A DNA stretch of 64,000 nucleotides from sequence record NC_048046.1; one strand, 5' to 3'. The notes under the pieces are model-generated. The model was not told the DNA's origin. It did no database searches and saw only the letters and a program-made list of their open reading frames with translations. Positions 1 to 15,737 of the stretch are shown here, piece after piece. Numbering within the stretch: the stretch's first letter is position 1; each line of letters starts with the position of its first letter. The position numbers and the translations under genes are program-made.

Positions 1-552
1 GGGGACCCTTCGAAATTAGGGTAGAAATAGGCTAAAAAATAACTAAGAATTTCAGAGCCCGGCCCCGACCCCGAGCGCTCATCTACATTTGGTGCCAATT
101 TCGACATCACCCCATAGATGTGGGGCAAATCTTGGGCTCTAGACACCTGGGATTCTGCGGGGCGCGTTAACCATGTTTGTTTACGTTAATGCACCCTCGG
201 CCGGTAACCCTAATTCGTAGCCTTAAAATCCCCCGACTTTACCTGGAGTATGGCCCAGGCACTACCCGGTCAGACCGCTCCGGTATGGCCGCGAGATCGG
301 CGCGTCGACAGCCTCAGCGGCCTGTCTGCGCCCTGACAGCCGCCGGCGCCTGCCGACAAACCTACGGACCTCAGCCACCAAACCTACGGAGTCCGGCGAT
401 CGAGGTCCGCAGGTTGGGGGACCCTTAGAAATTGACCGGGGGACCCTTCAAAATTCACCCACCAGGGACCCTGGAAATTTCACCGGGGGACCCTTCGAAA
501 TTCTGCCTCCGGGGACCCTAGGAAATTCTGGAGCCAGGGACCCTGGAAAATT
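1..552 (+). repeat. Terminal GGGACCCT-N2-3-AAATT direct repeats (7 copies); probable genome-end/packaging signal
   Basis: Copies start at about 2, 418, 440, 465, 487, 512 and 537. The last six are spaced about 22-26 bp apart and the window begins exactly on a copy. The function is inferred. Confidence 0.8.
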
Positions 553-800
553 CACCCAGAATTTGGCCGGATCACCGGCCTATTTAAGCCCAACCCTCAG
601 ATCGGCATAAATATCGGCGATTTTACCCCATTTTCGGCCCAAAAACCCTTAAAAATCAGCTTTTTAGTCCCATTTCAGCATCGGCAACGCCCGCTCCGCG
701 CCCTGACTGACCGCAGTCATCCTTCAGCGCAAATGTGACTCACCAACCTGTCGTCACAATTCCTCCCACGTTTTCAACACGTTACAGAGTCACGTCTCAA

Positions 801-940
801 ATCCGGCCACGCCCAGCCCGATCCGGTCATCCGGCCAAACCTTAATCCGGCCATATCCGGACATCGCCTCGTCCCAGAAACTTCAATGAAATCAATAAAC
901 CCTCCACACCAAACGTGACTATCCGGACATATCCGGCCAC
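801..940 (+). repeat. Cluster of 7 ATCCGG(C/A/T)CA direct repeats
   Basis: Copies at 801, 821, 829, 845, 855, 921 and 931 in non-coding DNA. Confidence 0.75.
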
Positions 941-990
941 GCAAACGTGACTCTCGACATATTGCTGCACCGCAGCATAGCCCCAGCCCG

Positions 991-1039
991 TACAACCCAT
1001 TTCGGTTGTATTTCCGCTTTACAACCAATAACGGTTGTA
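991..1039. promoter_or_regulatory. Tandem pair of 20-bp palindromes TACAACC-N6-GGTTGTA (operator-like)
   Basis: 991-1010 and 1020-1039 have identical 7-bp arms and different 6-bp spacers. Confidence 0.7.
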
Positions 1040-1426
1040 TCTGCCCAGGCACATCCCCTCATCCCTGTCAACCCCACCTACCTGCGACCACCTCGCAGTC
1101 CTGATTTGGCAGAAACGAGACTGTGTCGCCGGCGCCGCGCCCCTGCGTTATCGTGCCGCGCTTGCCAGAGCGCCAGGATCGTGCCCTACTGTCGATCGGG
1201 AGCCGGCCTCCCTGGCTCAAGTGCTTCGGCGTAGCGGGAAGATCGAACCCAGCCCCGTGACTCGCTGCAATGCCGCCTTGAGCGACCTCGATCGTCTCTC
1301 CCAAGCGATATCGAGGTCAGGCCGGCTCCTATCCCACCTCCAGGTCACCCAAAACAGGGCTAGTGGCGCGGATTCACCCGTTTTTGGGCTAGTCTGGGCT
1401 CAAAACAGCCTAAATCGGGCGAAAAA

Positions 1427-1575
1427 CTCGACAAAACGCCATTTTATTCGCAAAACTTGACGCGATTCCATTAATTTGACGCGACGTCATTCCATTTCGC
1501 CAACTTGACACGACGCCATTTCATTTCGCCGACTCGACATGACGCCATTTCATTCTCTTGACGCGACGCCATCCC
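1427..1575 (+). repeat. About 6 degenerate tandem repeats of 21-30 bp, consensus TTGACGCGACGCCATTTCATTTCGCC (iteron-like)
   Basis: Units start near 1428, 1457, 1476, 1505, 1534 and 1558. Confidence 0.75.
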
Positions 1576-1607
1576 GTTCTGCCCGGCGCTCGACCACCGC
1601 CCAGGTC

Positions 1608-1840
1608 GGTTAAGGTAAACGTCAGGCCCGTTAACCATGATCGTTAGGGTTAACGCCCAGGTAGGGTTACGAATTAAGGTAAACGCGGAGTTAGGGTTAA
1701 CGTTCGTTAAGGTTAACACCACGTCGCTCGGCTAACAGTAGTAGTGTTAACGTGCAACGCACTGTTAGGGTTACGAATTAAGGTTAACGCGCCCGGCGGT
1801 CATACCGGGTAATACTTAACGGGCGTTAGGGTTAACGCCC
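1608..1840. repeat. Dense cluster of TTAAC / TTAGGGTTAACG half-site repeats
   Basis: More than 10 TTAA/TTAG(GG) motifs, including TTAACCAT at 1631-1638, in an AT-richer non-coding stretch. Confidence 0.65.
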
Positions 1841-1847
1841 TAAGAGC

Positions 1848-1913
1848 GCGCAGCCTCGCCGTTGCGCCCCTACGGTTCGAAGAGCCCGGCCCTGCCGGGT
1901 CCTGCCCGGCTAC
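1848..1913 (-). ncRNA. Conserved non-coding element, copy 1 of 4 (candidate sRNA)
   Basis: Core GCCCCTACGGTTCGAAGAGCCCGGCCC at 1866-1892, downstream of the minus-strand box at 1931. Confidence 0.5.
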
Positions 1914-1980
1914 CTCTACACCCTAGCGGCTATTTCTTAACAAAACGTAAACGCCCGACACTTTCGCGCCGGGCGTCTCG

Positions 1981-2244
1981 TTATGCGTCGTCCGCTTGCG
2001 CGGCGGCGCCGTAGTCGTGTTGATCCCATAGGACGCCCAGCGTTTGGTCAGGGCTGAAATGGGGGCAAACCGTTTCGATTGTGTCGTAAGTCTCCCGGAA
2101 GGCGAGCGCGTCGTCATCCTGGAGCCAAACCGACGTTTTGGCGGCCTTGTTGCGCAGCGTGTACGCCGCGCCGTTGCCGTAGCTGTCAAGGGCGAAGCGT
2201 TCGCCCTCCGATATGCGAATCGGGCCTGAGTACATGGTCAGCAC
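1981..2244 (-). CDS. Hypothetical early protein (87 aa)
   Basis: Protein-like composition; overlaps the next minus-strand ORF in an operon-like way. Confidence 0.75.
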   Translation of the reverse strand: MLTMYSGPIRISEGERFALDSYGNGAAYTLRNKAAKTSVWLQDDDALAFRETYDTIETVCPHFSPDQTLGVLWDQHDYGAAAQADDA

Positions 2245-2498
2245 CCCGTCGGGTCGGCCTTGGCGTAGCGCCAGCGCTCGCCGTCATGCCAAAGCCCGGT
2301 TGAGTGAACCGTTCCGTACTCGCGAATCTCGCGACGGGCGGTTTCGGGGTCGATTCGGTCGTATCGCCACCCCTTGCCGGCCGAGTCTTCGGAGGCTTGC
2401 GCCTCGCGTAGCTCTTTGGCCGTCATTTCGAAGATGTGGCGGGAGTAGCCGACGATTTCACCGGCCTCTTTCATGGGAATTCGGCGCATGACGTACAT
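2238..2498 (-). CDS. Hypothetical early protein (86 aa)
   Basis: Protein-like ORF with a GGAG RBS upstream. Confidence 0.75.
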   Translation of the reverse strand: MYVMRRIPMKEAGEIVGYSRHIFEMTAKELREAQASEDSAGKGWRYDRIDPETARREIREYGTVHSTGLWHDGERWRYAKADPTGC

Positions 2499-2600
2499 GT
2501 CGCGTTCTCCGAAGGCGCCGGGCGTTTCCGCCCGGCGCTAGGTTACCAGAGCGCCCAGAGAATGAGCGCGGCGAGTAGCAGGGGCGTAAGCTTGATCAAG

Positions 2601-2894
2601 CTACAGCCCCAAGGCATGGGGGACGCCCCAAACGGCCGCCGCGTTGCGCGGGCGGGCGTCAAGGGCCAATCGCCACCGGTAGAGGTATTCTCGCGCCGCC
2701 GCTTGTTCGGGCGTCCGGCCGTGTCCGATACGCTCCGCCATGCGGGTTGCGACGTCGGAGCCGGGAACCTTGCGCACCGGGTCGGAGCACATGTCCGCGA
2801 AGAGCGCGCACGCCTCTTTGATTGCCGGCGCGTTGTCCGCGAAGGACTGGCGCAAGAAATCGACGAGAGGGACGCGTTTAGGCGTTTCGTTCAT
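2601..2894 (-). CDS. Hypothetical early protein (97 aa)
   Basis: First ORF downstream of the minus-strand box at 2955. Confidence 0.75.
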   Translation of the reverse strand: MNETPKRVPLVDFLRQSFADNAPAIKEACALFADMCSDPVRKVPGSDVATRMAERIGHGRTPEQAAAREYLYRWRLALDARPRNAAAVWGVPHALGL

Positions 2895-3065
2895 AGGGCC
2901 TCACGATGTCAAAGAGCGCGGCGGGGTTGTCCGCCGACCCCTGCAATCTCGCACCTATTTCTTAACAAGACGTTAACGGCCGAATCTTTTTTGCGTTTAC
3001 GTTTTGTTAAGGAATGGGCGTTAGGTTGCTCTCGACGGCGCAACCCGCGCCCCTGGAGCAAGGCC

Positions 3066-3473
3066 ATGTTTTCGAACCTCCCGCCGCACCTCTTCGTTTC
3101 GTCCGCTGGCGGCGACCTCTTCGACACCCGCGACCCGGATTGGAATTTCAAGCCGCCGCTTCGCCGCGCCTATTCGACGGCCGCCGACCCTATCGAGACG
3201 CTTTCTCAGGTCAAGGCGGCCTTGCGGGCGGGTCCTTACGCTTGGCCGGGCGGGTATCCCCTGTATTTCGTCACCCGCGACGGCGCCGCCCTGAGTTTCG
3301 ACGCCGTGCGCTCGCAATTCGCCAGCGTGGCGGATGACTTCATGTCGGACTCCTCGACGGGCTGGCGCGTCTGCCGTGTTGAAATCAACTATGAGGATTC
3401 CGACCTGCGATGCGACCACACGGGGAAAGCTATCCCCGCCGCGCACGGTGACGACGAAGACGAACCGGCTTAA
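3066..3473 (+). CDS. Hypothetical protein (135 aa; AWPGGYPLY motif, C-terminal CDHTG)
   Basis: ATG at 3066 after a CCTGGAG RBS and the box at 2996. This is the plausible 3' part of the 345-aa track ORF. Confidence 0.8.
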   Translation: MFSNLPPHLFVSSAGGDLFDTRDPDWNFKPPLRRAYSTAADPIETLSQVKAALRAGPYAWPGGYPLYFVTRDGAALSFDAVRSQFASVADDFMSDSSTGWRVCRVEINYEDSDLRCDHTGKAIPAAHGDDEDEPA

Positions 3474-3539
3474 CCTTTTGTTAAGAAATAGCCGGTAGGG
3501 TGAAACCTGCCGGCGCATCCCGCGCCCTGGAGCCTGCTT

Positions 3540-3833
3540 ATGTCGCACGTCTATGACATCGAATATACCGACACGTTCGCCGGGGAGGCGAATTACTCAT
3601 GGGTTCGCCGGGCGACCGTGACCATGCCAGAGCTAACCCATTACGGGTATGACGGCGGTTCGAACTACTCCAAGGCGAACAAGGTTTTTAACCGCGAACT
3701 CATGAAGCGCGCCAAGGCCGCCATGGGCCTGACGGGCGTCAAGGGCGTCTCGACCACGCACGGGGACACCCTGGAGTTTCGCCCCTACGGCTCCGCGACG
3801 GTCCTTTTCGCCAACTATCGCGAAATAGACTGA
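3540..3833 (+). CDS. Hypothetical protein (97 aa)
   Basis: Box at 3470, leader hairpin and CCTGGAG RBS; followed by a hairpin at about 3840-3867. Confidence 0.8.
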   Translation: MSHVYDIEYTDTFAGEANYSWVRRATVTMPELTHYGYDGGSNYSKANKVFNRELMKRAKAAMGLTGVKGVSTTHGDTLEFRPYGSATVLFANYREID

Positions 3834-3902
3834 CCACGACGCCCGGCGCCTGGACGGCCGCCGGGCGTTCGCTTGCCCAGCCCGTTAACCATGTTTTTGA
3901 AA

Positions 3903-3969
3903 AGCGCCCAGCCTCGCCGTAGCGCCCCTACGGTTCGAAGAGCCCGGCCCCGCCGGTCCCGCCGGCTAC
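3903..3969 (-). ncRNA. Conserved non-coding element, copy 2 of 4
   Basis: Core at 3924-3950, downstream of the minus-strand box at 3987. Confidence 0.5.
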
Positions 3970-4096
3970 AGGTCCAATCTAGCGCTCATTCCTTAACAAA
4001 CCGTAAACGCGAGAATCTTTTTCGTGTTTACCTTTTGTTAAGAAATAGGGTCTAGTGTTCTCGTGTCGGGCGGATCGGCCGCCCTGGAGAACCTGA

Positions 4097-4681
4097 ATGC
4101 AAAACATGCCCAAGCATGACCGCGAAGTCATCTGCGCCATCGTTACGCACGCCCTGGCGCTCGGCTATGAAGTCGCCTGCGCTGATACCGAACTCGACTG
4201 GACGACTGACCCGGCCGCGATCTTCGCCGACCTCGGCGAGTGCGACGAAGAGCGAATCAGCTTCCGCAAGCCCGGCGACCCGACGCGCAAGCATTGGGTT
4301 TATCTGGTCTACGGGAACGGGGAAGGCGAAACCGTCTGCGACTACCGCGCCGACGCTGAAACCCGCGAAATCCTCGCCGTCGCCGACGCCCTGGCCAGCG
4401 TGCAAGACATGGAAGCGCTCGCGCTCCAGCACCGCAAGCCCTTCACGGAAGACGTGGGCGGCGACCTGCAACTGTCCATCGCCTGGACCGGGACTGGTTT
4501 CATGTACGGGCTCGCCCGTGGCCCGGACGCGCCTTCGCTGGACCTTCGGCGCCTGCAAGCGGTGTCTTGGCTCGCCACGCGCCCCGCCGACGACTACCGG
4601 AGCGCCGCCACCGTTGACCAAGTCGTCGCGGTCATGGCGGAAGTCGACAAGGTCCCGCACCTGATCGAACGCGCCGCCTAA
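4097..4681 (+). CDS. Hypothetical protein (194 aa)
   Basis: Box at 4027 and CCTGGAG RBS; terminator-like hairpin at 4688-4712. Confidence 0.8.
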   Translation: MQNMPKHDREVICAIVTHALALGYEVACADTELDWTTDPAAIFADLGECDEERISFRKPGDPTRKHWVYLVYGNGEGETVCDYRADAETREILAVADALASVQDMEALALQHRKPFTEDVGGDLQLSIAWTGTGFMYGLARGPDAPSLDLRRLQAVSWLATRPADDYRSAATVDQVVAVMAEVDKVPHLIERAA

Positions 4682-4783
4682 ATCGAACGCCCCGGAATCT
4701 TTTTCCGGGGCGTTTACCTCTTGTTAAGAAATAGCCGTTAGGTTGCTCTTGTGGCGGGACGGTCCCGCCCTGGAGAAGACCCG

Positions 4784-5182
4784 ATGAACGAAGCCCAAAC
4801 CAACGCCGCCGCCGCGATCAAGACCACGGGTGAAACGATCCTGGCGAAGATCGAAGCGGCCCGCGCGGAAGTCGCGGCGAACCCGCACCTCGCCGGCCAA
4901 TTCTACCTTGTCGCCGACACGGGCGGCGGTCTGGTCGTGAACTCGGACGGCGCGCACGGCTACCGCCTGAGCGGCATGTTTAGCCCCCTGACTCTGGCCT
5001 TCGACGCCACCGCCAAGGAAGAGGCCTATAAATTCGCCGGTCACTGGAATCGCCGCATAACGCCGGCTCAACGGGCCTCGCGCTGCACCGTCACCGTGAC
5101 GACCCGTGAGGAGGCCTGGAGCGCCCTCGAAAAGTCCTGGCGCGAAACCTTCGCCATGATCGAAGCCGCCAAGAAAGACTAA
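4784..5182 (+). CDS. Hypothetical protein (132 aa)
   Basis: Box at 4713, hairpin, RBS, ATG at 4784; hairpin at 5189-5212. Confidence 0.8.
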   Translation: MNEAQTNAAAAIKTTGETILAKIEAARAEVAANPHLAGQFYLVADTGGGLVVNSDGAHGYRLSGMFSPLTLAFDATAKEEAYKFAGHWNRRITPAQRASRCTVTVTTREEAWSALEKSWRETFAMIEAAKKD

Positions 5183-5283
5183 GGCGAGCGCCCCGGCCGA
5201 AAAGCCGGGGCGTTTACCTCTTGTTAAGAAATACCCTCTACAGTCCAACTTGTCGGCGCATCCCGCGCCCTGGAGCAAGTCCC

Positions 5284-5430
5284 ATGCGTAAGCCTCGCCT
5301 GTATTTCGAATATTACGGCGTCACCGTCTGGCGCAACACGTCGCCCGGCTTCGCCCTGCGCTGGAGTGGCGGCGGGTACGCGGCCGACACCCAAGAGGGA
5401 ATCCGCCGCCTGATCCGTGAGGGTCGATGA
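5284..5430 (+). CDS. Small hypothetical protein (48 aa)
   Basis: Box at 5213, CCTGGAG RBS, ATG at 5284. Confidence 0.7.
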   Translation: MRKPRLYFEYYGVTVWRNTSPGFALRWSGGGYAADTQEGIRRLIREGR

Positions 5431-5714
5431 GCAACGCCGCCCGCGCCGAAAAATGGATCGGCCGCGTTGAGCAAGGAGTCGGCCGCGCCCTCGAAAGAGC
5501 GGCGCGGTCCCGGCCCTTCGCTATCGAGGCGGAGGCCGCCCCGTTCCTGGCGACCTTCAAGCGTCAGGCCGCCGGACATGCCGCGCGCGCCCAGACCCTG
5601 GCCAGCCAAGGCGACCGCGTCGGCGCCTTGGTCGAGGCGGGACACGCGCAACGGTGCGCCGCGAACCACGCGAGAATTTTGGAGGCCGTCGACTCCGTCT
5701 TAACCTCTTGTTAA
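5427..5714 (+). CDS. Hypothetical protein (95 aa)
   Basis: ATGA overlap with the upstream gene. Confidence 0.7.
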   Translation: MSNAARAEKWIGRVEQGVGRALERAARSRPFAIEAEAAPFLATFKRQAAGHAARAQTLASQGDRVGALVEAGHAQRCAANHARILEAVDSVLTSC

Positions 5715-5770
5715 GAAATAGGGGCTAGGTTGCTCTTGTGGCGGGACGGTCCCGCCCTGGAGAACCTGAG

Positions 5771-6037
5771 ATGAGCACCCTTCCCGTTCGGACCCTGGCG
5801 CAAATCGGTCACCTGACTTGGGTGGCCACGCGCAAAGGCGCCGGCTTCGATGCGGCGTTCGCCGATAGTGACGACGCTATCCGCCACGCCATGAACACGG
5901 GCGGCAACGTCGGCCACACCCTCCTAGGCTGGATTGACATGTTCAGCCCTTCGGCGACGTTCGAAGAGAACCAACGGCAGGTCGCGGCCTTCCTCGAACG
6001 CGGCGACGAATTCGACCGCGTCATGGGCCAAGGCTAA
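5771..6037 (+). CDS. Hypothetical protein (88 aa)
   Basis: Box at 5700, hairpin and RBS; hairpin at 6043-6067. Confidence 0.8.
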   Translation: MSTLPVRTLAQIGHLTWVATRKGAGFDAAFADSDDAIRHAMNTGGNVGHTLLGWIDMFSPSATFEENQRQVAAFLERGDEFDRVMGQG

Positions 6038-6105
6038 GCCAAGCGCCCCGGCAGAAAAGCCGGGGCGTTTACCTTTTGTTAAGAAATACCCTCTAAGGTG
6101 ATCAC

Positions 6106-6170
6106 GTACCCGGCAGGACCGGGCGGGCCGGGCTCTTCGAACCGTAGGGGCACAACGGCGGGGCTGCGCG
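6106..6170 (+). ncRNA. Conserved non-coding element, copy 3 of 4 (inverted relative to the others)
   Basis: Reverse-complement core at 6125-6151, downstream of the plus-strand box at 6068; ends GCGCGTTTTTC. Confidence 0.5.
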
Positions 6171-6269
6171 TTTTTCAGCGCCTCGAAAAAGTTCACCGCG
6201 TTAACGTCTTGTTAAGAAATAGCGCCTAGGGTGGCTGTGTGGCGGGACGGTCCCGCCGGAGAAAACGAC

Positions 6270-6716
6270 ATGACCACGCAAGCCGCCCTCGCCGCCCGCC
6301 TGGACCGCGCCGCCCGGATCATCCGGGGCGAAGTCGCCGCCTCCAAGCGGAAAGAACGCAAGGCCCGCCGCGCGTTTTCCCGCGCCCTCGCCGGCATGGA
6401 CATTCCGACCTATGTCGCTTGGCTGAACGATCCGGCCGACTCCTTCGCCCTTACCGACGACGTCGCCCATTGGGCGCAAATCGGAATCACGAACGCCGCG
6501 CAACTCGGCGACTACCTGAACGGGTGCGTTCGTCGGGAAATGGAAAAGGACGCTCGCAACGGTTATTGCGATGACGCCTTTGACGACTACGCCGAACGCG
6601 GCGGCTACGGCGGCGGCGATGACGGGGAGGGCTACACCTTCGACCGCGACCGCGCCGAAGGGATCGCCGCCGACAAGGCCAAGCGCGACGCCATGCACGA
6701 AGACATGCCGTTTTAA
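6270..6716 (+). CDS. Hypothetical protein (148 aa), basic N-terminus and acidic C-terminus
   Basis: Box at 6201, hairpin and GGAG RBS. Confidence 0.8.
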   Translation: MTTQAALAARLDRAARIIRGEVAASKRKERKARRAFSRALAGMDIPTYVAWLNDPADSFALTDDVAHWAQIGITNAAQLGDYLNGCVRREMEKDARNGYCDDAFDDYAERGGYGGGDDGEGYTFDRDRAEGIAADKAKRDAMHEDMPF

Positions 6717-6795
6717 CGGTTTGTTAAGAAATAGCGTCTAGAACGAAACCACGGGCGGCGGATCGGCCGCCGCCCGGACCTTCGGAGCCCCGAAA

Positions 6796-6948
6796 ATGTT
6801 CCTCTGGATTTGGACCGTCGCCACCGACGAACTGACCCCCGCCTATAAGAACCCGCCGGCCGTCGCGCCGGAAGGTTGCCTTTTCCTCATGGCGGCAAAC
6901 CAACGCCAAGCGGAACGCGCCCGCGACCTCGCCAAGGCCGCCGGCTAA
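6796..6948 (+). CDS. Small hypothetical protein (50 aa; MFLWIWTVATDEL...)
   Basis: Read manually and absent from the ORF track; box at 6713, hairpin and GGAG RBS. Confidence 0.65.
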   Translation: MFLWIWTVATDELTPAYKNPPAVAPEGCLFLMAANQRQAERARDLAKAAG

Positions 6949-6973
6949 ACCCCTCAATCTGGAGCGCAAGCCC

Positions 6974-7543
6974 ATGACGCAACGCTACCGCCTCGCCGAT
7001 CAAATCAAGGTCGCGAACGAGGTTTCGAATCTACTCTATTCGGCCTCCGACGTCGTCGCCGTCGCTGCGCAGTACGAAACGACGCCCGCCGGTCAAGCCA
7101 AGCTCGCCAAGCTGCGAAGCGACCTCATCGGCATGAGCGCCGGCGCCCTGACGCACAAGCCGCCGGCCGCCGTGCTCGAAACCCTCGTTTGGGTTGTCGA
7201 GTTGGCGCAAGATCGCGCTACCGGCGCGGACTTCAACACGCCGCAAGAGGCCCTGGACGAACACGACGCCTTAGCCTTCGTTTGCGACTGGCTGAAGGCT
7301 CAAGGTCAGGACGTGTCGCCGATCATCGGCGCGCAACCGTCTTCCGAAGCGCTCGCTAAGTTGGTAGCGGCTCGCGACGCCGCACAAGCTGAACTCGACG
7401 CGCTGGAGGTTCCGGCCCTGCCTGAAGCGGTTGACGTCGTCGCCGACGTTCTCCGCTACAAGGACGCCCAAGGCGACGCGGACGACGTCCTTTCCGCCCT
7501 GGCGCGCGCCGGCTTCAAGGTCGTTCGGGAAGGGGAGGCCTAG
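6974..7543 (+). CDS. Hypothetical protein (189 aa)
   Basis: CTGGAG RBS and typical codon usage. Confidence 0.8.
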   Translation: MTQRYRLADQIKVANEVSNLLYSASDVVAVAAQYETTPAGQAKLAKLRSDLIGMSAGALTHKPPAAVLETLVWVVELAQDRATGADFNTPQEALDEHDALAFVCDWLKAQGQDVSPIIGAQPSSEALAKLVAARDAAQAELDALEVPALPEAVDVVADVLRYKDAQGDADDVLSALARAGFKVVREGEA

Positions 7544-7546
7544 CCT

Positions 7547-7786
7547 ATGGCGCAAACCTTCCCCCACGTGCTGGCGTCGCAGCACTTCCCCGGCCGGGGC
7601 GCTACGGCGCCCGGATCGGTCGTCCTTCGCGACCTAGGCCCGACCGCGCCGCATCGCTACGTCACCCACTTCCGCAACGAAGAGGACCCGGCGAAGCCGT
7701 ATCACGTCATGGGCCACTATTTCGCCGAAGACGAGGAAGCGGACGCACAAGCCGATTTCCGTAAACGCTGCGCTCGCGGCTACTGA
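7547..7786 (+). CDS. Hypothetical protein (79 aa)
   Basis: GGAGG RBS; operonic. Confidence 0.75.
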   Translation: MAQTFPHVLASQHFPGRGATAPGSVVLRDLGPTAPHRYVTHFRNEEDPAKPYHVMGHYFAEDEEADAQADFRKRCARGY

Positions 7787-7814
7787 TCAACCCTCAGGAC
7801 AAGGAGTCCAGACC

Positions 7815-8006
7815 ATGACCGACAAGACCCCCGCCAAGCCGAAGAAAGCGCCCGCCAAGGCCAAGGCCGCCCCGGCTCCGAAGGAAGCCGCCGCCGCGCC
7901 CAAGACGCCCCGCAAGGCCAAGGCCGCCCCGGCTCCGGCCGCTCCGCGTCCGAAGGTGCGCGGCCTGAAAGCCGCCCTTTTCGGGGGCGCGTTCAACCGC
8001 CTGTAA
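7815..8006 (+). CDS. Lys/Ala/Pro-rich histone-H1-like peptide (63 aa)
   Basis: AAGGAG RBS; repeated KAKAAPAP motif. Confidence 0.65.
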   Translation: MTDKTPAKPKKAPAKAKAAPAPKEAAAAPKTPRKAKAAPAPAAPRPKVRGLKAALFGGAFNRL

Positions 8007-8099
8007 AACTTCCCGGCGTTTACCTCTTGTTAAGAAATAGGAGGTAGAACATAAACACGGGCGGCGGATCGGCCGCCGCCCGAACTCCCTGGAGGCCCC

Positions 8100-8408
8100 A
8101 TGGCCCGTAAGCTGACTCTCTCGCTGCTCGCGAACCCCGATTTGAGCATGGCGAACGTCACGACCACGTCGCAGCGTATCGAGGACTGGACCGACACCCT
8201 TTATCCCGAAGACGGGAGCGAAGGCGCTGAAATCGTCCTGCCGCCGGTCACGTTCGGCGCCGTGTATGAGCGCGCCGAAGACCTGCTGACCAAGTCGCAG
8301 CAACGCACCGCCGAACGGTCCCCGAATCGCGAAGTCTCGCCCGACCTCGCCGAACGTTTCGAGGGAGCGACGGCCACGACGAATGGCGGGCGTCGTTTGA
8401 CCCCATGA
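8100..8408 (+). CDS. Hypothetical protein (102 aa)
   Basis: Box at 8019, hairpin and CCTGGAG RBS. Confidence 0.75.
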   Translation: MARKLTLSLLANPDLSMANVTTTSQRIEDWTDTLYPEDGSEGAEIVLPPVTFGAVYERAEDLLTKSQQRTAERSPNREVSPDLAERFEGATATTNGGRRLTP

Positions 8409-8782
8409 TGAACTATGTTTGGCCGGTCGCGCTTCCCTACCGCGCCGAAGCCTCGCAAGTCGCCGCGCTGCTGCAAGAATTCTGCCCGGTCATGACTCTG
8501 GTCAACTTCGGCGACGACTCGCCGTTCTGCTCCGAGTCCCACGCCTTCGCGCTCTCGGGCGGCGGAATGAACCTCGCCGACCAAATCGCGACGGCCTATC
8601 TCTGCGCCGGCGTCGTTCCGCCCTCGTCTCTGCTGGAATCGCTCCCCGGCGTGATCAGCGATTATCAACGCGACAAGGTCGCCCCGGTCCTGCGCAAGGC
8701 CTATCGGAAAGCCGCCGATTACCACGCGTACCGGGCTAAGGCGATCCGCCGGGAAGCCGGCCGCGTCTTCACCAAGTCCTAA
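8405..8782 (+). CDS. Hypothetical protein (125 aa)
   Basis: Operonic; hairpin at 8789-8813. Confidence 0.75.
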   Translation: MMNYVWPVALPYRAEASQVAALLQEFCPVMTLVNFGDDSPFCSESHAFALSGGGMNLADQIATAYLCAGVVPPSSLLESLPGVISDYQRDKVAPVLRKAYRKAADYHAYRAKAIRREAGRVFTKS

Positions 8783-8860
8783 GCCTGGAGGCCCGGCGCA
8801 CCCCGCCGGGCCTTTAGCGTGTCTGGCGCGTTAACCATGTTCTAGAATTGCGGGCAGGTT

Positions 8861-8915
8861 CGCCGTAGCGCCCCTACGGTTCGAAGAGCCCGGCCCCGCC
8901 GGTCCCGCCGGCTAC
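8861..8915 (-). ncRNA. Conserved non-coding element, copy 4 of 4
   Basis: Core at 8870-8896, downstream of the minus-strand box at 8933. Confidence 0.5.
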
Positions 8916-9041
8916 AGGACTCACCCTAGACCCTATTCCTTAACAAACCGTAAACGTGAAAAAGAATCTCGCGTTAACCTCTTGTTAAGAAATACCCCCT
9001 ATGGTCCTCTCGACGGCGCACCCCGCGCCCTGGAGTCTGAC

Positions 9042-9647
9042 ATGACCCTTCCGACCCTTTACCTTCGCCGCGAACCGACGTCGCAAGGCGTCCCGAACGT
9101 CGATGACTCGCCGGAGCGTTTCGACATCGTGGCCTATCGCGACAAGGCGATGACTGACGCCGCCGGCCGCTGGCCTTGGTTCTATCAGTCCAAGCCCCGC
9201 AAGGGCGCGAAAACCGTCATGCTCAATTGCATGCGTCACCGCGCCGCGTGGCGCCCCGATCATCACGGCGAAACCCCGTTCATGCTGGAAACGCGCCGCG
9301 CCATGACGGCCGCGACGATGCAAATGGACGCCCTGATTTCCCGCCTGCACGCCGAAGGCCGTAAGCTGGCGCTCGCCGGGACCGTGGCCTATTCCAAGGC
9401 GCACCCGCGCCGAACGGTGACGTTCGTTAGCGCCATGGGCTCCAATTGCCTGCACGTCACGCCGGGCGGGACGTCCTATCGCGGCGAATACCAACTGACC
9501 ACGGGCGACCATGGCGACTACCCGCCGCCGGCCTGGATGGAAGAGCTAGACCGCCTTTGCGACGACTACCGACTCGGGACGTTCCCGGATAACCTCAAGG
9601 TCGTGTGCAAGGGTGGAAAGATCATCGAGCAAGTTTCCAACTGGTAA
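9042..9647 (+). CDS. Hypothetical protein (201 aa)
   Basis: Box at 8974, CCTGGAG RBS, ATG at 9042. Confidence 0.8.
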   Translation: MTLPTLYLRREPTSQGVPNVDDSPERFDIVAYRDKAMTDAAGRWPWFYQSKPRKGAKTVMLNCMRHRAAWRPDHHGETPFMLETRRAMTAATMQMDALISRLHAEGRKLALAGTVAYSKAHPRRTVTFVSAMGSNCLHVTPGGTSYRGEYQLTTGDHGDYPPPAWMEELDRLCDDYRLGTFPDNLKVVCKGGKIIEQVSNW

Positions 9648-9713
9648 CCTTTTGTTAAGAAATAGCCGGTAGGTTCATCCCTGCCGGCGCATCCCGCGCC
9701 CCTGGAGTCGAAC

Positions 9714-10364
9714 ATGCCCCGCACCGTCACTAAGGAAGTTTTCCAGTACGACGAACTGACGCCGAAGGCCCAAGAAAAGGCCCGCGACTGGTTCCGCGAC
9801 ATGCTGGACCGCACCGCCGATAACGAATTCGCCGAACCCGTCATGGAAGAGGCCGAACGCGTCGCCGGCATGCTCGGAATCACCTTCAAGCCGACGCGCG
9901 GCGGTGATCCGGTATCGTGGTCGGGCTTCTACAGCCAAGGCGACGGCGCCAGCTTCGAGGGCCGTTACGCGGCCCCGGAAAAGCCGGCTTTCGAGACGAT
10001 CAAGGCCGAATTCCCTACGGAATTGAAGTTGCAAGCCATAGCGGCCGAACTGGACGCCTTCCAAGATCGCCACGGCCGCCGACTGGTCGCGGACATCACC
10101 CGCAACGGCCGGAGCAACTACGTTCACGCCTATACCGTCGATATCGACGTTTGCGAGCAAGACGAGGCCGCCGACGACGGACTCGTTAACGTTTCGCCGA
10201 CGACCGAAAAGGCCATCGCCGACGAACTGCGCAATTTCATGGGCTGGATTTGGGATCAACTCCGCGAAGCCTATGAAGGCGACCGCGAGGACGAAACCGT
10301 CGCCGACAATATCCGCGCCAACGAATACGAATTTGAGGCGGACGGAACCCGGACCCGCGACTAA
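9714..10364 (+). CDS. Conserved phage/plasmid hypothetical protein (216 aa; DEL..KAQEKARDW and FYSQGDGASF motifs)
   Basis: Box at 9644 and RBS. The motifs resemble a widespread mobile-element family from memory; not verified. Confidence 0.8.
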   Translation: MPRTVTKEVFQYDELTPKAQEKARDWFRDMLDRTADNEFAEPVMEEAERVAGMLGITFKPTRGGDPVSWSGFYSQGDGASFEGRYAAPEKPAFETIKAEFPTELKLQAIAAELDAFQDRHGRRLVADITRNGRSNYVHAYTVDIDVCEQDEAADDGLVNVSPTTEKAIADELRNFMGWIWDQLREAYEGDREDETVADNIRANEYEFEADGTRTRD

Positions 10365-10414
10365 CGCAACCCGGCCGGCGCTTCGGCGCCGGCCTAGCCT
10401 GGAAAGGCCCCGCA

Positions 10415-10615
10415 ATGAACATGGCTCGCAAAGAACACGCCGGAAGCTACCAAATCGGGATTTGGGGCGTTGAGCGCATCCGACGCGGCGTCTGGGAAGC
10501 CCGCGCCAACGGGCCGGGTACGCTTGGCGACGGCTCGCCGCATACGTATCCGACGCTCGACGCGGCGCACCTCGCCTTGACCGGCGAGCCCCGGCGAGAA
10601 ATTCGCGGCTCTTAA
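10415..10615 (+). CDS. Hypothetical protein (66 aa)
   Basis: Protein-like ORF whose stop lies inside the next box. Confidence 0.65.
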   Translation: MNMARKEHAGSYQIGIWGVERIRRGVWEARANGPGTLGDGSPHTYPTLDAAHLALTGEPRREIRGS

Positions 10616-10672
10616 CCTGTTGTTAAGAAATAGCCGCTAACCTCTAATCATCGAACAACGGGAGACACCCCC

Positions 10673-11245
10673 ATGATGACCAACCCTCACGCCCTGGCGA
10701 TCCTCGCCGCCGCAAACAAGATTCTTCCCCTGACGCACCTGCACCCGTGCGACCAACGCGCGCCGGCCGTCGATATCATCGGCGACCTGTTCAAGATCGC
10801 CGACGACATCGACGCCGCCGCCCCGGCTTCGGCCGTGACCCTGCCGGCCGGTAACGAGACGCTGGCGAAGCTGGGCGCCGCCGTCGCCCTGGCGCGCCTG
10901 GAACTCGAAAGCGCCTATCAGCGGACCGAAAGCATTAGCGAGCGCCACCGCCTCGCGCCGCTCATCGCCACCATGTCGGACGCCCTCAAGGCGTACCGCG
11001 CCGACCCGGCGACGCCCAAGGCTCCGGCCGCGCCCCTGCCGCACGCCTTCGCCACCATTCCGGACGGTTCGGCCCTGCAACGCGCCACCGCCGCCGGTAT
11101 CGCGATCTTTCAGGCCGAAGGCTCGACGTTCTACACGCCCGGCCCGTCCGCCAACTTCACCCGCGACGACTGGCGCGGCCCGTACTACGGCGCGGCCGAA
11201 GCCGCCCGCGCCGCCCTGGCCGAACGCAACGGGAAGGCGGCCTAA
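10673..11245 (+). CDS. Hypothetical protein (190 aa)
   Basis: Box at 10612 and GGAG RBS. Confidence 0.8.
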   Translation: MMTNPHALAILAAANKILPLTHLHPCDQRAPAVDIIGDLFKIADDIDAAAPASAVTLPAGNETLAKLGAAVALARLELESAYQRTESISERHRLAPLIATMSDALKAYRADPATPKAPAAPLPHAFATIPDGSALQRATAAGIAIFQAEGSTFYTPGPSANFTRDDWRGPYYGAAEAARAALAERNGKAA

Positions 11246-11248
11246 GCC

Positions 11249-11773
11249 ATGCTGAATCCGATCCTTCGCGAACGGCGCGAGCCGGTCGATATCGTCCTAG
11301 ACGCCCTCAAGGGCCGTATGGGCGAAGCCGACGCTTCGGAGGCCTGCGACTCCGTGTTCCTGGCCCTGCAAAACGAGGGTTACGCCGTCGCCCCCTTCAC
11401 GATTGAAGGCCGCCGCCTCACGCAAACGGATACGGGCGTCAAGCTGGGCGACGCGCTCCGGACGCTCTTCGAAGCGGTCCCGAACTACGCCGTTCGGTCG
11501 CAACGTCTCGCCGACGCCGTGAGCGTCGCTAGCGGGTACGTCTATCAACCCCGGTATCGCTTCCTCGCCGACGACGGCACGGGCGCGGCGATCCTGACCA
11601 ACTGCGACGACGGCCGGAGCGTTTATTTCCAGCCCGGCCCGGACGCCGACGAGGCCCGCGCCGAATTCGAGCGTTCGCAGTACACCGACGAGACGGCCGA
11701 AGGCTTCGGCGTCGCCGGCCTCTGGCGCGCCAAGGCCGCCGCCTATTTCAATGACGATCCGGAAGGGCTCTAG
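11249..11773 (+). CDS. Hypothetical protein (174 aa)
   Basis: Operonic spacing. Confidence 0.8.
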   Translation: MLNPILRERREPVDIVLDALKGRMGEADASEACDSVFLALQNEGYAVAPFTIEGRRLTQTDTGVKLGDALRTLFEAVPNYAVRSQRLADAVSVASGYVYQPRYRFLADDGTGAAILTNCDDGRSVYFQPGPDADEARAEFERSQYTDETAEGFGVAGLWRAKAAAYFNDDPEGL

Positions 11774-11776
11774 CCG

Positions 11777-12256
11777 ATGAGCTACGACACGAAGACTCTC
11801 GCCGCGCAAACGATCATCGACGCGCACACCGCCGGCCGTGGCCTGGAGGAAGGCCAAAGTCGGGCAACCGACCTCTACCACGTTCTCGACTCGCTGCTGA
11901 CGTGGAGCGACTTCCACGGCGTGGACTTTGACGCCACGCTTTCGGAGCTACGCGCCGACCTCGCCGAAGAGCCGCCTTGCGCCGGCAATGTCGGCCGGGT
12001 CGTCATCACGCTGGAAACCGGCGAAGGCGCCCGCGAGGAATTCGTGTCGCGTCACTACACGATTGCCGAAGCCGTCGCCGCCCTGGATGGCCCCGGTATC
12101 GACGCCAAGGCCCGGCATGAGGGCCGTTACACAATCGCCGCGCCGCACGGGCTGGGCTCGGACCTTGAAGCCGTCCCCCTGGCGCGCAAGCTGGGCTATC
12201 AGGGCAAGGATTGCCCCGCCGCCGCCTTCGCCTTCCTCTCTACCCGGATTCCCTGA
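11777..12256 (+). CDS. Hypothetical protein (159 aa)
   Basis: Operonic spacing. Confidence 0.8.
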   Translation: MSYDTKTLAAQTIIDAHTAGRGLEEGQSRATDLYHVLDSLLTWSDFHGVDFDATLSELRADLAEEPPCAGNVGRVVITLETGEGAREEFVSRHYTIAEAVAALDGPGIDAKARHEGRYTIAAPHGLGSDLEAVPLARKLGYQGKDCPAAAFAFLSTRIP

Positions 12257-12258
12257 TC

Positions 12259-12699
12259 ATGGCCAAGCGCAAGCCCTACACCCCGAACCCGTTCGCCCGC
12301 TACAGCGTCGGCGGCCTCTCCGCCGAAGCCAAGGCCGCCCGCCGGCCTTCCCTGGCCTGCCTTCGCGCCATCGTCCGGGAAGCCGCCGCGCTAAAGGCCG
12401 AAGCCGTGGCGCGCCTCGCTGATCAACGGTGGATGCGCGGCGCCTCGCTCATGGCGCAAAGCTGGACCCGTGACAACGCGGCGATGAGCGTTCACGCCCT
12501 AGCCCGGAAGAACCTCGAATATCTCCGGATGCGAGCGCACCTCACGGTTTCGCCAGAGCGGGCCGGCTCCTACGCGCCCGCCGGCTGGCCTATCGACCGC
12601 CCGGCCCTGGAAAAGTGGCAAGCCCTCAACCCGCCGCCCCCGGCCCGTGACTATGACTCGCTCATCGGCCGCGCCGCCCGCGCCTCCGGCTGGGCTTAA
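12259..12699 (+). CDS. Hypothetical basic protein (146 aa)
   Basis: ATG 2 nt after the previous stop. Confidence 0.75.
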   Translation: MAKRKPYTPNPFARYSVGGLSAEAKAARRPSLACLRAIVREAAALKAEAVARLADQRWMRGASLMAQSWTRDNAAMSVHALARKNLEYLRMRAHLTVSPERAGSYAPAGWPIDRPALEKWQALNPPPPARDYDSLIGRAARASGWA

Positions 12700-12712
12700 G
12701 GAAAGGATTCCC

Positions 12713-13000
12713 ATGTCGGACCTGATCAAGCTCAACCCCGAACCCGCCAACATGACCGCCGTCAAGCTGGGCGCCGTCATCCTGTATTTCAGCTATCAGA
12801 CCCTTGTCGGGTTCCGTTGCCCGCATCTGGGCACGGTGTCCAATCCGGACGGCAAGGGCTACGGCCGAACGACCGCCGGCCACATGACGAAATTCGGCCT
12901 CGCCAGCGCTCGGACCACGGCGACGGAATCGGATTTCCAGACGCTCGCGCTTCGGGCCGTTCAAGGCCACGTCCGCGACATCGGCGAATTGCTGATCTAG
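12713..13000 (+). CDS. Hypothetical protein (95 aa)
   Basis: AAGGA RBS; ATG at 12713. Confidence 0.75.
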   Translation: MSDLIKLNPEPANMTAVKLGAVILYFSYQTLVGFRCPHLGTVSNPDGKGYGRTTAGHMTKFGLASARTTATESDFQTLALRAVQGHVRDIGELLI

Positions 13001-13014
13001 TCGCGCCCGTTCAA

Positions 13015-13115
13015 GAGTCACGTTTCAGGCCTAACCTGACTCCAACAGAGTCACATTTTCCCGAAACCGTGACTCCGCCTCGATTTCCCGTCACGTTCTG
13101 GTCTAAACGTGACTC
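13015..13115. repeat. Three tandem 28-bp palindromes, consensus GAGTCACGTTT-N6-AAACGTGACTC
   Basis: Copies at 13015-13042, 13048-13075 and 13088-13115. Confidence 0.85.
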
Positions 13116-13306
13116 GTCCTAGTTCCTCAGTAAAAACAAGGAGTTATCTTGCGCTTCATCGAACACATGCTTGAAGGTTCCGGCGTCCTTTTCGCAATCG
13201 TCATCCTTTTCCTGCTGCATTAACCTCTTGTTAAGAAATAGCGGGTAGAGGTAGAGGGGTCAGGCGCACACCGCGCCGGCCCCTCTTTCTGTTGGAGCGC
13301 AGACCA

Positions 13307-13798
13307 ATGCCCGACTACAAGACGAACGACCCCAAGGGCTACATGGGCGACCCCCGCCGGGGCGCCGCCATGGGCCGTCCGACCTACGCGCCGGACGCCG
13401 CCGGCTGGACCGTGGAAGGCCTGAAGACGGCCGCCGCCCTCGAAGAGGACCGCGCCCGGATCGCCGAAGAGCAACGCGAGAACCGCCCCGGCGACGGCTA
13501 TAAGCGCCAGTGCTGGGAAGCCGCCGCCGCGTCGTTCCGCAAGGAAGCCGAACGCCTCCGCTCGCTCATCCCGGCCGCCCGCGCCATGCTCGCCGCCTCG
13601 CCGAAGATCACCCTTCAACGCGTCCGCCTGGACTCGGGCGGCTACGACCGCAACGGGACCTATTTCGGGCATGACCTCCCCCTGTATTGGGCGGCGGACG
13701 AATCCGGCGACTATGACGCGACGTTCCGCGCCGCCGACCGCAACGCGGCGAAGGCCATCGTTCGCGAGACGTACCCCGCCGCCCGCTTCTACAACTAG
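13307..13798 (+). CDS. Hypothetical protein (163 aa; GGYDRNGTYFG motif)
   Basis: Box at 13220 and GGAG RBS. Confidence 0.8.
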   Translation: MPDYKTNDPKGYMGDPRRGAAMGRPTYAPDAAGWTVEGLKTAAALEEDRARIAEEQRENRPGDGYKRQCWEAAAASFRKEAERLRSLIPAARAMLAASPKITLQRVRLDSGGYDRNGTYFGHDLPLYWAADESGDYDATFRAADRNAAKAIVRETYPAARFYN

Positions 13799-13875
13799 CC
13801 GGCGTTAAGGGGTTGTTAAGAAATAGCCGGTAGGGTCACACCTACCGGCGCACCCCGCGCCCTGGAGAAAATCGG

Positions 13876-14724
13876 ATGACCTCGCAACTCTGCATCGCCG
13901 ACGAAAACGCCGCCCTGGATTTCCTGGCGCGCGCCGTCCCCGCCCTCTGTGACGCCGGCATTATGCCGCCGACGCTGGATATTCTGGATTCGCTCGCCGC
14001 CAACCCGAACGCGTACGGTCTTAGCCGCGTCCCGGCCCTGGCGCCGCTCGCCGCCGAATGGGCCGGACCGTATCAGACGCAAGCGAATGACGGCGAAGGT
14101 CCGACCACGGTCCGGGCGCTGATCGTCGCCGCGCTGGGCGCCGATGAGTCCGGCAACTTCGATATCGGGTTCCGCACCTACGCCGTGAACGACTCGGAAC
14201 ACTGGAATCTTGCCGGGACTCCTCTGGAGGGCGTGCCGGCCTATAGCCTGTATCTGATCCGCGAAGGCGAGCAAACTTACATGTGCTCGCTCACGCCATC
14301 GAGCTACGCCTATGGGATTCAGAACGTGTTCCTCTATCCCGATCAAGACGGCTTGCCGGCTGTCAATGAATACGGGCAAACGGCGGTTGAAGCGTATATG
14401 GACGCCGAAAACCCCGAATATGAGGGCGTCGAAGATACCTATTTCGGGTATATGGGCGACCGCGCCGCATTCGACCGCCGCGAAGCCGAAGAGGGCGACG
14501 TTTCAGAGCGCCTTAGCTTCGATAAGTCGGTTTTCCGTGTGGACCTCTCCACGCTGGACGGGTTCGCCGCGTCGCCGGCCAATCCCCGCGAAACGACCGC
14601 GTTCGCCGACTTCGAAACCCTCGCCGCCGCCTTCTACAAGGCCGCGTGCGACTCGGCTTGGGAGGACGCGAAGGAATACGTTAGCGGCAACGCTACCGAA
14701 CCGCGCATTTTAACGGGTTGTTAA
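13876..14724 (+). CDS. Hypothetical acidic protein (282 aa)
   Basis: Box at 13805 and CCTGGAG RBS. Confidence 0.85.
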   Translation: MTSQLCIADENAALDFLARAVPALCDAGIMPPTLDILDSLAANPNAYGLSRVPALAPLAAEWAGPYQTQANDGEGPTTVRALIVAALGADESGNFDIGFRTYAVNDSEHWNLAGTPLEGVPAYSLYLIREGEQTYMCSLTPSSYAYGIQNVFLYPDQDGLPAVNEYGQTAVEAYMDAENPEYEGVEDTYFGYMGDRAAFDRREAEEGDVSERLSFDKSVFRVDLSTLDGFAASPANPRETTAFADFETLAAAFYKAACDSAWEDAKEYVSGNATEPRILTGC

Positions 14725-14788
14725 GAAATAGCCTGTAGGTTCTCCCCATGGGCGGCGGATCGGCCGCCGCCCGACCGGAGCGCCAGAC

Positions 14789-15001
14789 ATGGCTATCTCG
14801 ACCGCCGCCCTTAACGCTCACGTCGCCGAAGTGGCGGAATGTGAGTCCGACCTGAACGAAGCCTTTGAGGCTTTCGACCGGGGCGAAGCGCCCGACCGTG
14901 GCGACTGCGATTATGCGTTTCTGAAGCTGGAAACGGCGGAAATGCACCTCGCGCAATTCCTGGCGCCGGTCTTGGCGTCGCCGATCTTTGTTCACGCCTA
15001 G
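14789..15001 (+). CDS. Hypothetical acidic protein (70 aa)
   Basis: Box at 14710, hairpin and RBS. Confidence 0.75.
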   Translation: MAISTAALNAHVAEVAECESDLNEAFEAFDRGEAPDRGDCDYAFLKLETAEMHLAQFLAPVLASPIFVHA

Positions 15002-15012
15002 GAGGGCCTGAC

Positions 15013-15228
15013 ATGTCCAAGCGTCCTGACTTCACCGGCCGGCTTCCCGTCCGCGACGACGTGCAAACGGTGACGTGTCACCGCCCGCCGACGCGCTCGG
15101 AAATCAACTTCGGCCACGGCGCGACGCATTACCGGGATTTCCCGGTTGCGGCCGTGTGCTGGGCGGGAACCCGGTTCAAGAAAACGTGGTTCGTCGCTGA
15201 CGACGGGCTTCGCTACTACACGTCTTAA
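15013..15228 (+). CDS. Hypothetical protein (71 aa)
   Basis: GGAGG RBS. Confidence 0.75.
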   Translation: MSKRPDFTGRLPVRDDVQTVTCHRPPTRSEINFGHGATHYRDFPVAAVCWAGTRFKKTWFVADDGLRYYTS

Positions 15229-15305
15229 CCTCTTGTTAAGAAATAGGCCCTATGGTCTATTTCGAGGGCGGCGGATCGGCCGCCGCCCGAACCGGAGTAG
15301 ACGCG

Positions 15306-15737
15306 ATGTCCGCCCGCTTTCAAACCGCCGCCGCCGCCCGTCAATTCATGCTCGGCGGTAACGCCGTGGTCACGCTGCAAAGCGAAAAGACCGGCGCGCG
15401 CTTCACCTACAAAATCAAGGCCGCCCCTGACGGTGCGGTGTCGTTCGTTAAGCTCCTGACGGGTCAGGACAACGAATCGGATTACGCCTATATCGGGTTG
15501 ATCCGGGGCGCTCAATTCGCCCGGACGGCTAAGGCTCGCGTCACCGCCGACGCCCCTAGCGTCAAGGCCCTGGAATGGGCCTGGAAGGCGCTAAGCGCGG
15601 ATCGCTTGCCCGATACCCTGGCGATCTTCCATGAGGGCCGTTGCGGGCGCTGCAATCGCCTCCTGACGGTCCCCGAGTCCATCGAGTCGGGCTTCGGCCC
15701 GGAATGCGCCGGCCGCGTCCTGCGCCAAGCCGCCTAA
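15306..15737 (+). CDS. DUF6011-like zinc-finger protein (143 aa)
   Basis: C-terminal GRCGRCNRLLTVPESIESGFGPEC motif. Confidence 0.75.
   Translation: MSARFQTAAAARQFMLGGNAVVTLQSEKTGARFTYKIKAAPDGAVSFVKLLTGQDNESDYAYIGLIRGAQFARTAKARVTADAPSVKALEWAWKALSADRLPDTLAIFHEGRCGRCNRLLTVPESIESGFGPECAGRVLRQAA

Follow-up and report, generated by a model that had tools for sequence, protein, structure and literature searches.

The direct terminal repeat of Caulobacter phage CcrPW (genus Colossusvirus, 308 kb) carries four copies of a conserved unit that contains no gene. With its 14 members, for which a covariance model was built, the unit forms a new candidate family of phage non-coding RNAs or leaders. The stretch analyzed here (the window; sequence record NC_048046.1) is 64,000 nucleotides long and was identified by megablast as bases 1-64000 of CcrPW. 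The terminal repeat covers bases 1-18404 (18.4 kb) and the element lies wholly within it; therefore every feature of the repeat occurs twice per packaged genome, which amounts to eight element copies, and a pattern scan of IMG/VR returned eight core matches on the CcrPW contig. By analogy with the leaders of ribosomal RNA (rrn) operons and the nut sites of phage lambda, the element may be a signal that loads Nus factors and lets RNA polymerase transcribe untranslated DNA. This reading is favored tentatively, with more doubt than confidence, and a discrete small RNA is nearly as likely.

Four exact copies of a 27-nt core, with none expected by chance and no match in 100 shuffled sequences, bear out the multicopy core described in the first-pass annotation of this DNA. 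They map to 1866-1892 (+), 3924-3950 (+), 6125-6151 (-) and 8870-8896 (+), all in unannotated intergenic gaps, and the corresponding units are called copies A to D in this order. Each core is found ~40 nt downstream of a promoter, with the TTGTTAAGRAAT part of the promoter box at 1932-1943 (-), 3988-3999 (-), 6076-6087 (+) and 8935-8946 (-), respectively. A motif search revealed 25 near-identical early promoters in the terminal repeat, whose common form is a left half-site, N5, TTGTTAAGAAAT, N5 and CTAGGGT. In 21 of these, a GGAG-type (Shine-Dalgarno-like) ribosome site and an ATG follow within ~75 nt, and 20 of the 21 gene-leading units have a GC-rich 5' hairpin ahead of the ribosome site that resembles the 5' hairpin of the element. 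The remaining four promoters lead to the hairpin and then to the conserved core, without ribosome site, start codon or shared frame. The contrast drawn earlier between boxes that lead to an open reading frame (ORF) and boxes that do not can thus be put at 21/25 versus 4/25. A coding function was rejected because no start codon follows the hairpin, the copies have no frame in common and copy A carries an indel of 2 nt; the description of the unit as non-coding and multicopy holds, with 14 copies now known.

The boxes themselves had been written as TTAA-N7-TTAA, which needs correction: the four at the element are TTTA-N7-TTAA, one base off the full CtrA site in the left half-site, a variant also present at six gene-leading promoters. 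The exact TTAA-N7-TTAA form occurs at 14 sites in the window, every one away from the element copies. According to Mascolo et al. (2022; PMC9437464), CtrA binds predicted sites in several related phages, and the intergenic CtrA-type sites of phiCbK-like phages are concentrated in their direct terminal repeats; the element's promoters are of this published class. The units may accordingly be gated by the cell cycle, an extrapolation from the CtrA binding published for related phages.

Homologous copies were sought with blastn, a fuzzy pattern, an nhmmer profile and the covariance model, which agree on 14 copies in seven phiCbK-like phages, with 0-4 per repeat. Four are found in CcrPW, four in syntenic positions in Colossus, two in RBC57, one each in BL64, Ccr2 and BL57, and a diverged one in Brevundimonas phage Bajun. 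The covariance-model search of phiCbK-like genomes, which the first-pass annotation had suggested, scored these 14 copies at 50-101 bits and returned just these, the next-best match reaching 14.6 bits. Searches with nhmmer and the covariance model gave no further copy in the rest of the window and no element in the terminal repeats of phiCbK, Karma, CcrBL9 and CcrSC, and the element is therefore accessory. An RNA-seq time course exists for phiCbK, a phage without the element.

The identity of the 37-nt core is 84-100% in every pair of copies compared. Between paralogous copies the flanks are 45-70% identical and the core 92-100%, and between CcrPW and Bajun all segments outside the core drop to 41-55%. 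A conserved island of 37 nt that extends across genera cannot be produced by gene conversion or recent transfer, and the core is therefore under selection. A promoter-type box points into the element in all 14 copies from the seven phages, the four of CcrPW among them, as had been claimed for these four, and orientation and spacing between promoter and core are constant throughout. These data bear on the proposal that the element is a functionless leftover of the shuffling of terminator-promoter-hairpin cassettes, kept alike by gene conversion. The repeat region is indeed a mosaic of 21 such cassettes, the unit of copy B moves together with a gp004-like gene as one block, and a possible decayed copy exists at 43-90. 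The core is nonetheless kept in Bajun, where nothing else aligns, it stays at 92-100% where the paralogous flanks have fallen to 45-70%, and gene conversion would neither be confined to a block of 37 nt nor cross phage genera, so that a leftover is very improbable. The possible fifth copy (43-90, minus strand, near the left genome end) is a weak candidate based on sequence likeness: a 13-nt exact stretch (0.1 expected) lies within ~30/45 aligned bases matching the plus strand of copies A, B and D, with no promoter and half of the core missing. The cassettes in question occupy 2900-18100 and consist of terminator, promoter, 5' hairpin and ribosome-binding site (RBS); in several of the 21, the T-tail of the terminator is the left half-site of the following box. 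Early regions built as a mosaic in this way favor the shuffling of cassettes.

Beyond these phages the element has no recognizable relatives in the collections searched. A tight core pattern had no match in 185,579 species genomes or in JGI metagenomes. Looser patterns gave 16 and 26 scattered matches, and those that were inspected map within or next to coding sequence of unrelated bacteria rich in GC; the 16 single matches in species genomes are about as many as a rough chance estimate predicts, with none in Caulobacter. No credible match other than CcrPW and Colossus was found in species genomes, metagenomes and IMG/VR, and a host-derived sequence was rejected on this ground. Mimicry of a CRISPR repeat, as in RNA anti-CRISPRs, was also rejected, given the absence of the core pattern from the 185,579 species genomes and the chance level of the loose matches. 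With Rfam 15, nothing in the whole window reached the gathering thresholds and none of the four units matched anything even at E up to 10, in line with the earlier remark that no known RNA family was recognizable. Gill et al. (2012) likewise obtained no RNA elements except tRNAs from Rfam for the phages analyzed there. A tRNA, tmRNA or tRNA-like element was dismissed, with ARAGORN finding nothing in the window and the bases beside TTCGAA not being complementary on either strand.

Two hairpins had been proposed for the unit, of which the first stands and the second does not. Hairpin 1 folds in 13 of the 14 copies, Bajun being the exception, with a 5-7-bp stem and a GGA-containing loop; G-C pairs have turned into C-G in places, one base has been inserted together with its partner, and two pairs differ on both sides. 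Of the four copies in CcrPW, only B and D preserve hairpin 2 (CCGTAG/CTACGG) whole; two pairs of this hairpin are disrupted, in 3 and 5 of 13 sequences, and never compensated. Compensatory changes in the core, expected of a structured RNA, were sought under three fold models (an extended hairpin 2, an RNAalifold hairpin, and the latter closed by GCCG/CGGC) and none was found; the covariation score is within the range of controls, for a set of 14 copies whose close similarity precludes a fair test of covariation. Folds of single sequences do not exceed those of shuffled sequences in stability (z-scores -1.2 to +1.7). The alternative fold GCUCUUCG-AAC-CG(U)AGGGGC closed by GCCG/CGGC was discarded as a demonstration of structure, because its 98% of compatible cells merely reflects invariant columns. 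All substitutions in the core are located in the loop, bulge or apical pairs of this fold, which supports it weakly at best, and its two U-G pairs exist on the promoter-sense strand alone. Under the refuting condition that the first-pass annotation had named, the lack of compensatory changes, a structured RNA is not supported for the core. Since no fold shows such changes, the core appears to be read as a linear sequence.

A sequence read without covariation could also act as duplex DNA, recognized by a protein of phage or host, or as a hairpin signal in DNA, its link to the promoter being incidental. Beside the invariance of the core, a GTTAAC-containing CtrA-type site 15-39 nt downstream of every copy fits this idea. 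The core, however, has neither dyad nor direct-repeat symmetry, and an orientation to the promoter that is fixed in 14/14 copies would be needless for a symmetric duplex site. The GAA mini-hairpin that the first-pass annotation offered as a DNA alternative fared no better and was rejected: it is absent from the DNA minimum-energy folds, whose z-scores are ordinary, and it is weakened in the D copy of Colossus. A DNA site is accordingly an improbable explanation, with a little more in its favor than the shuffling leftover.

The favored reading starts from the block that is invariant in 14/14 copies, which begins with GGCUCUUCG. An early promoter with a CtrA-type box would start the RNA of a short gene-less unit, beginning with the 5-7-bp hairpin and its GGA-containing loop, followed 7 nt on by the invariant G-rich stretch of ~37 nt. 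The first part of this stretch (GGCUCUUCG) would be a BoxA-type site that binds host NusB-S10 on the nascent RNA. Such binding would load Nus factors onto the very RNA polymerase that made the RNA, and the Nus-loaded polymerase would keep transcribing untranslated DNA, unstopped by Rho or by the many terminators of the region. The clearest case would be copy A, with 1.8 kb of conserved non-coding repeats ahead of it. Promoter linkage, lack of coding capacity, the conservation pattern and the likeness to BoxA were seen directly; from here on we infer that transcription occurs, that Nus factors bind and that there is any antitermination.

The comparison rests on BoxA sequences printed for Aquifex (GGCUCCUUGGCA), Escherichia coli (UGCUCUUUAACA) and Bacillus subtilis (AUGAUCUUUGAAA) (PMC3177189, PMC13753749) and on the published gamma-proteobacterial consensus GYTCTTTAANA. 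Of the eight nucleotides read by NusB-NusE (Aquifex GGCUCCUU, E. coli UGCUCUUU), seven agree with GGCUCUUCG, namely positions 1-7, with the reservation that the BoxA of the host may differ. The arrangement is also familiar, as the rrn leaders of E. coli and B. subtilis consist of a promoter, a small 5' hairpin and then BoxA, and BoxA alone is said in the rrn leader literature to be sufficient for recruiting antitermination factors. In the element, the BoxA-like motif starts ~30 nt after the inferred start site, and the gap between hairpin and motif is 7 nt in 12 of the 13 hairpin-bearing copies and 8 nt in Colossus copy A. Further support comes from the position of the element behind the sole four of 25 promoters that lack RBS and ATG, from the lack of a conserved terminator downstream, and from the orientation of the A-type copies, which in five phages point into the same long stretch of non-coding repeats. 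Among the 25 promoters, moreover, only those of the four units give G-rich transcripts (skew +0.06 to +0.19; 4-5 runs of at least 3 G), and G-rich RNA is a poor Rho substrate. A G-quadruplex was rejected, the fourth G-run not being conserved. GGGCTCTTCGA occurs a second time at 35828, within gene gp070, and was set aside there as a chance match.

Several observations weigh against a BoxA-type signal. Position 8 is C, as opposed to U in all three printed BoxA sequences, and in the crystal structure U8 is read base-specifically by both NusB and NusE, through O4 and N3. The likeness was found post hoc, after several other motifs, and the chance of a 7/8 match somewhere in a 37-nt block is estimated at a few percent. 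BoxA would cover 8-12 of the 37 invariant bases and leave ~25 unexplained. Three of the four copies point against the gene flow; starting from B and D, a processive polymerase would transcribe the early genes upstream in antisense. In phiCbK, Karma, CcrBL9 and CcrSC the repeat region is kept although the element is missing, and the element is therefore dispensable. Finally, the T-run that follows a possible long hairpin in copies B and C fits a discrete small RNA better.

Such a small RNA would be an abundant, trans-acting early transcript of ~75-80 nt, composed of the 5' hairpin and a long imperfect hairpin, whose core pairs with a conserved host or phage RNA or serves as decoy for a host protein; possibly the decoy target would be NusB-S10, starving the host rrn operons. 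The idea deserves serious consideration, even if it too has less for it than against it. A strong promoter of its own, eight copies per packaged genome and the absence of an ORF suit it well. The T4-5 run in copies B and C comes after a hairpin domain of ~-24 kcal/mol, and B and D lie in intergenic gaps beside the terminator of the upstream gene, like many small-RNA genes. The patchy accessory distribution is typical of host-takeover or anti-defence cargo. The terminal T-run noted earlier is real, however, only in B and C: copies A and D lack it, and a scan for terminators was negative at all four 3' ends, so that no terminator is conserved. Folds no stabler than shuffles (over the whole range of z-scores given above) are not what a structured small RNA would lead one to expect, and 37 invariant nucleotides go far beyond the needs of a pairing seed. 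No above-chance complementary target was found in the 64-kb window. An 11-nt match to gp004 in CcrPW has 1-3 mismatches in the four relatives and is thus not conserved, and antisense regulation of this convergent gene was rejected.

The genomic contexts of the copies fall into four types, named after the copies of CcrPW. Type A is present in CcrPW, Colossus, RBC57, BL57 and Bajun and always faces the same non-coding region, made up of a cluster of GTTAAC-type repeats and then iteron-like repeats up to the genome end. The cluster and the iteron-like direct repeats recur in Colossus, RBC57, BL57, phiCbK and Bajun. In CcrPW the left 1.85 kb (1-1850) are non-coding and comprise three repeat families: GGGACCCT..AAATT (1-20 and 416-558), 29-nt units (1476-1554) and at least 8 units of the GTTAGGGTTAAC type (1610-1850). 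This left-end region may be an origin or packaging region. phiCbK keeps the repeat region and has a 22-nt tandem repeat in place of the type A promoter and element, with five tandem units at 2160-2290 where RBC57 and BL57 have the promoter and element.

It is conceivable from this neighborhood that the element is a transcription-primed DNA element, in which the G-rich transcript forms an R-loop on the C-rich template and thereby opens or primes a replication origin or activates the neighboring repeat or iteron region. The four units give the sole G-skewed promoter-proximal transcripts, with 4-5 runs of at least 3 G, type A always adjoins GTTAAC-type and iteron-like repeats, and both the occurrence of copies in either orientation and the lack of a conserved terminator speak for it as well. 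Copies B, C and D, on the other hand, have no adjoining repeat cluster, the fourth and fifth G-runs are not conserved, phiCbK manages with the repeat region alone, and that region is itself only a putative origin. Altogether an R-loop is unlikely, if slightly less so than a DNA site. Also unlikely, though a shade less than the R-loop, is a more far-reaching version of the Nus-loading reading, namely a cell-cycle-gated RNA that hijacks host Nus factors and is made from eight copies per genome once CtrA activates the early promoters. [quoted passage not shown]

The promoter of copy A (1920-1951, minus strand) reads TTTAC, N5, TTGTTAAGAAAT, N5, CTAGGGT and comes directly after the gp001 terminator (1978-1949). 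The element (1835-1916, minus strand; covariance-model match 88.3 bits, exact core) has its 5' hairpin at 1894-1910, where two extra bases are found, its conserved block at 1857-1892 and the BoxA-like 12-mer at 1875-1886, all on the minus strand, and points into the GTTAAC-repeat region. Copy C, the sole copy in the coding direction, is placed between the gp008 terminator (6041-6070), which its promoter (6068-6099, plus strand) directly follows, and the gp009 promoter at 6201. Its element (6101-6182, plus strand; 93.5 bits, exact core) has the 5' hairpin at 6109-6123 and the BoxA-like 12-mer at 6131-6142 (+) and is followed by a T5 run ahead of the gp009 promoter. Types C and D are restricted to the two Colossusviruses, CcrPW and Colossus. 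The promoter of copy D (8923-8954, minus strand) diverges from the gp016 promoter (8974), and the element (8839-8920, minus strand; 92 bits, exact core) carries its 5' hairpin at 8898-8912 and the BoxA-like 12-mer at 8879-8890 (-); it is convergent with gp015 and has no T-run.

Copy B has its promoter at 3976-4007 (minus strand), divergent from the gp005 promoter (4021-4055), and the TTTAC half-sites of the two promoters make a 29-nt palindrome at 4003-4031. The element (3893-3974, minus strand; 100.4 bits, exact core) comprises the 5' hairpin at 3952-3966, the BoxA-like 12-mer at 3933-3944 (-) and the 3' end GCGCTTTTC. Copies B and D are each then followed by TTAACCAT, an ungapped CtrA-type motif (motif as in PMC6180460), at 3885-3892 (+) and 8831-8838 (+). 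This motif occurs just five times in the terminal repeat, at 167 near the left end, at 1631 in the repeat cluster, at 3885, at 8831 and at 18383, 21 nt away from the right end of the repeat. Beyond the repeat it is found at 21814, 40714, 47452 and 32500 (-), at three sites up to 7 nt downstream of TTGACA, and such TTGACA-TTAACCAT pairs look, judging by sequence, like a second promoter class. In Bajun, a promoter of the same class as those of the element leads at ~10232-10350 (+) to a long palindrome with two inverted TTAACCATGTTTG sites and no ORF, a second type of cargo without a gene behind such a promoter.

Type B is convergent with the 97-residue gene gp004 (3540-3833, plus strand) and occurs, among Caulobacter phages, in exactly the five that have this gene. 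The two are found together in 5/5 of these phages, and an RNA partnership of the element with gp004 was considered and rejected: Agrobacterium phage JP1 has a gp004-like gene in a tight operon without any such element, and the confident AlphaFold model of gp004 (pLDDT 90) matches no solved fold. For these reasons the co-occurrence is taken as linkage, not as a demonstrated partnership. No Pfam family was found for gp004; more than 975 relatives at 70-85% identity are known from metagenomes and from Agrobacterium, Pseudomonas and Stenotrophomonas phages. Nearby, an unannotated 97-residue ORF at 2601-2894 (-) behind a promoter at 2957 (-) shares 77% identity with Colossus gp002. For gp003 (3066-3473, plus strand; 135 residues), the RefSeq name 'DNA ligase' looks doubtful, as it rests on a small PHROG family (98 positions) without Pfam support.

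Work on the Caulobacter cell-cycle model uses phiCbK-like phages as its standard phages, and a connection of their terminal repeats to the master regulator CtrA is already assumed. The promoters of the element belong to the CtrA-site-rich class described in PMC9437464; that paper deals with the sites and protein-coding targets, and neither in the passages of it that were searched nor in the other papers searched was a conserved gene-less unit behind such promoters found described. Should the BoxA likeness prove true, it would mean the use of Nus factors by a virulent alphaproteobacterial phage, outside the lambdoid world, and would provide a handle on how long untranslated phage stretches escape Rho. 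Should it fail, a clean new candidate RNA family would still be left.

Compared with known systems, the element is closest to the rrn leader (boxB-boxA-boxC) and the lambda nut site, with which it shares the position just after a promoter on nascent RNA, the lack of coding capacity, and a small hairpin followed by a linear conserved motif, GGCUCUU corresponding to BoxA positions 1-7 (PMC3177189, PMC13753749). It differs in having C in place of U at position 8, no boxC-like G/U-rich motif and a conserved block three times the length of BoxA, and in that most copies point away from genes. Its host is an alphaproteobacterium, BoxA being taken from other bacteria, and no N-like protein was identified. 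Another comparison is offered by phage small RNAs with their own promoter, such as lambda OOP. Here the likeness lies in a short non-coding unit with its own promoter and in the convergence of copies B and D with the 3' end of a neighboring gene; the core of the element, however, does not overlap that gene, the element is multicopy and lacks a conserved terminator, and no conserved target complementarity was found for it. The put RNAs of phage HK022 consist of two conserved stem-loops, are located at operon heads and act in cis without the need for a phage protein. A cis-acting RNA after early promoters that acts on its own polymerase would be much alike, yet the element has just the first hairpin supported, and a position at an operon head is true of copy C alone. 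The PeSL cassettes of T4-type phages are repeated modules of an early promoter and a stem-loop that flank small genes in a plastic early region. In CcrPW, promoter and stem-loop modules similarly bracket small genes in a plastic early region and are the likely substrate of the shuffling that moved the unit of copy B, but where PeSL modules flank genes, the element carries a conserved non-coding cargo.

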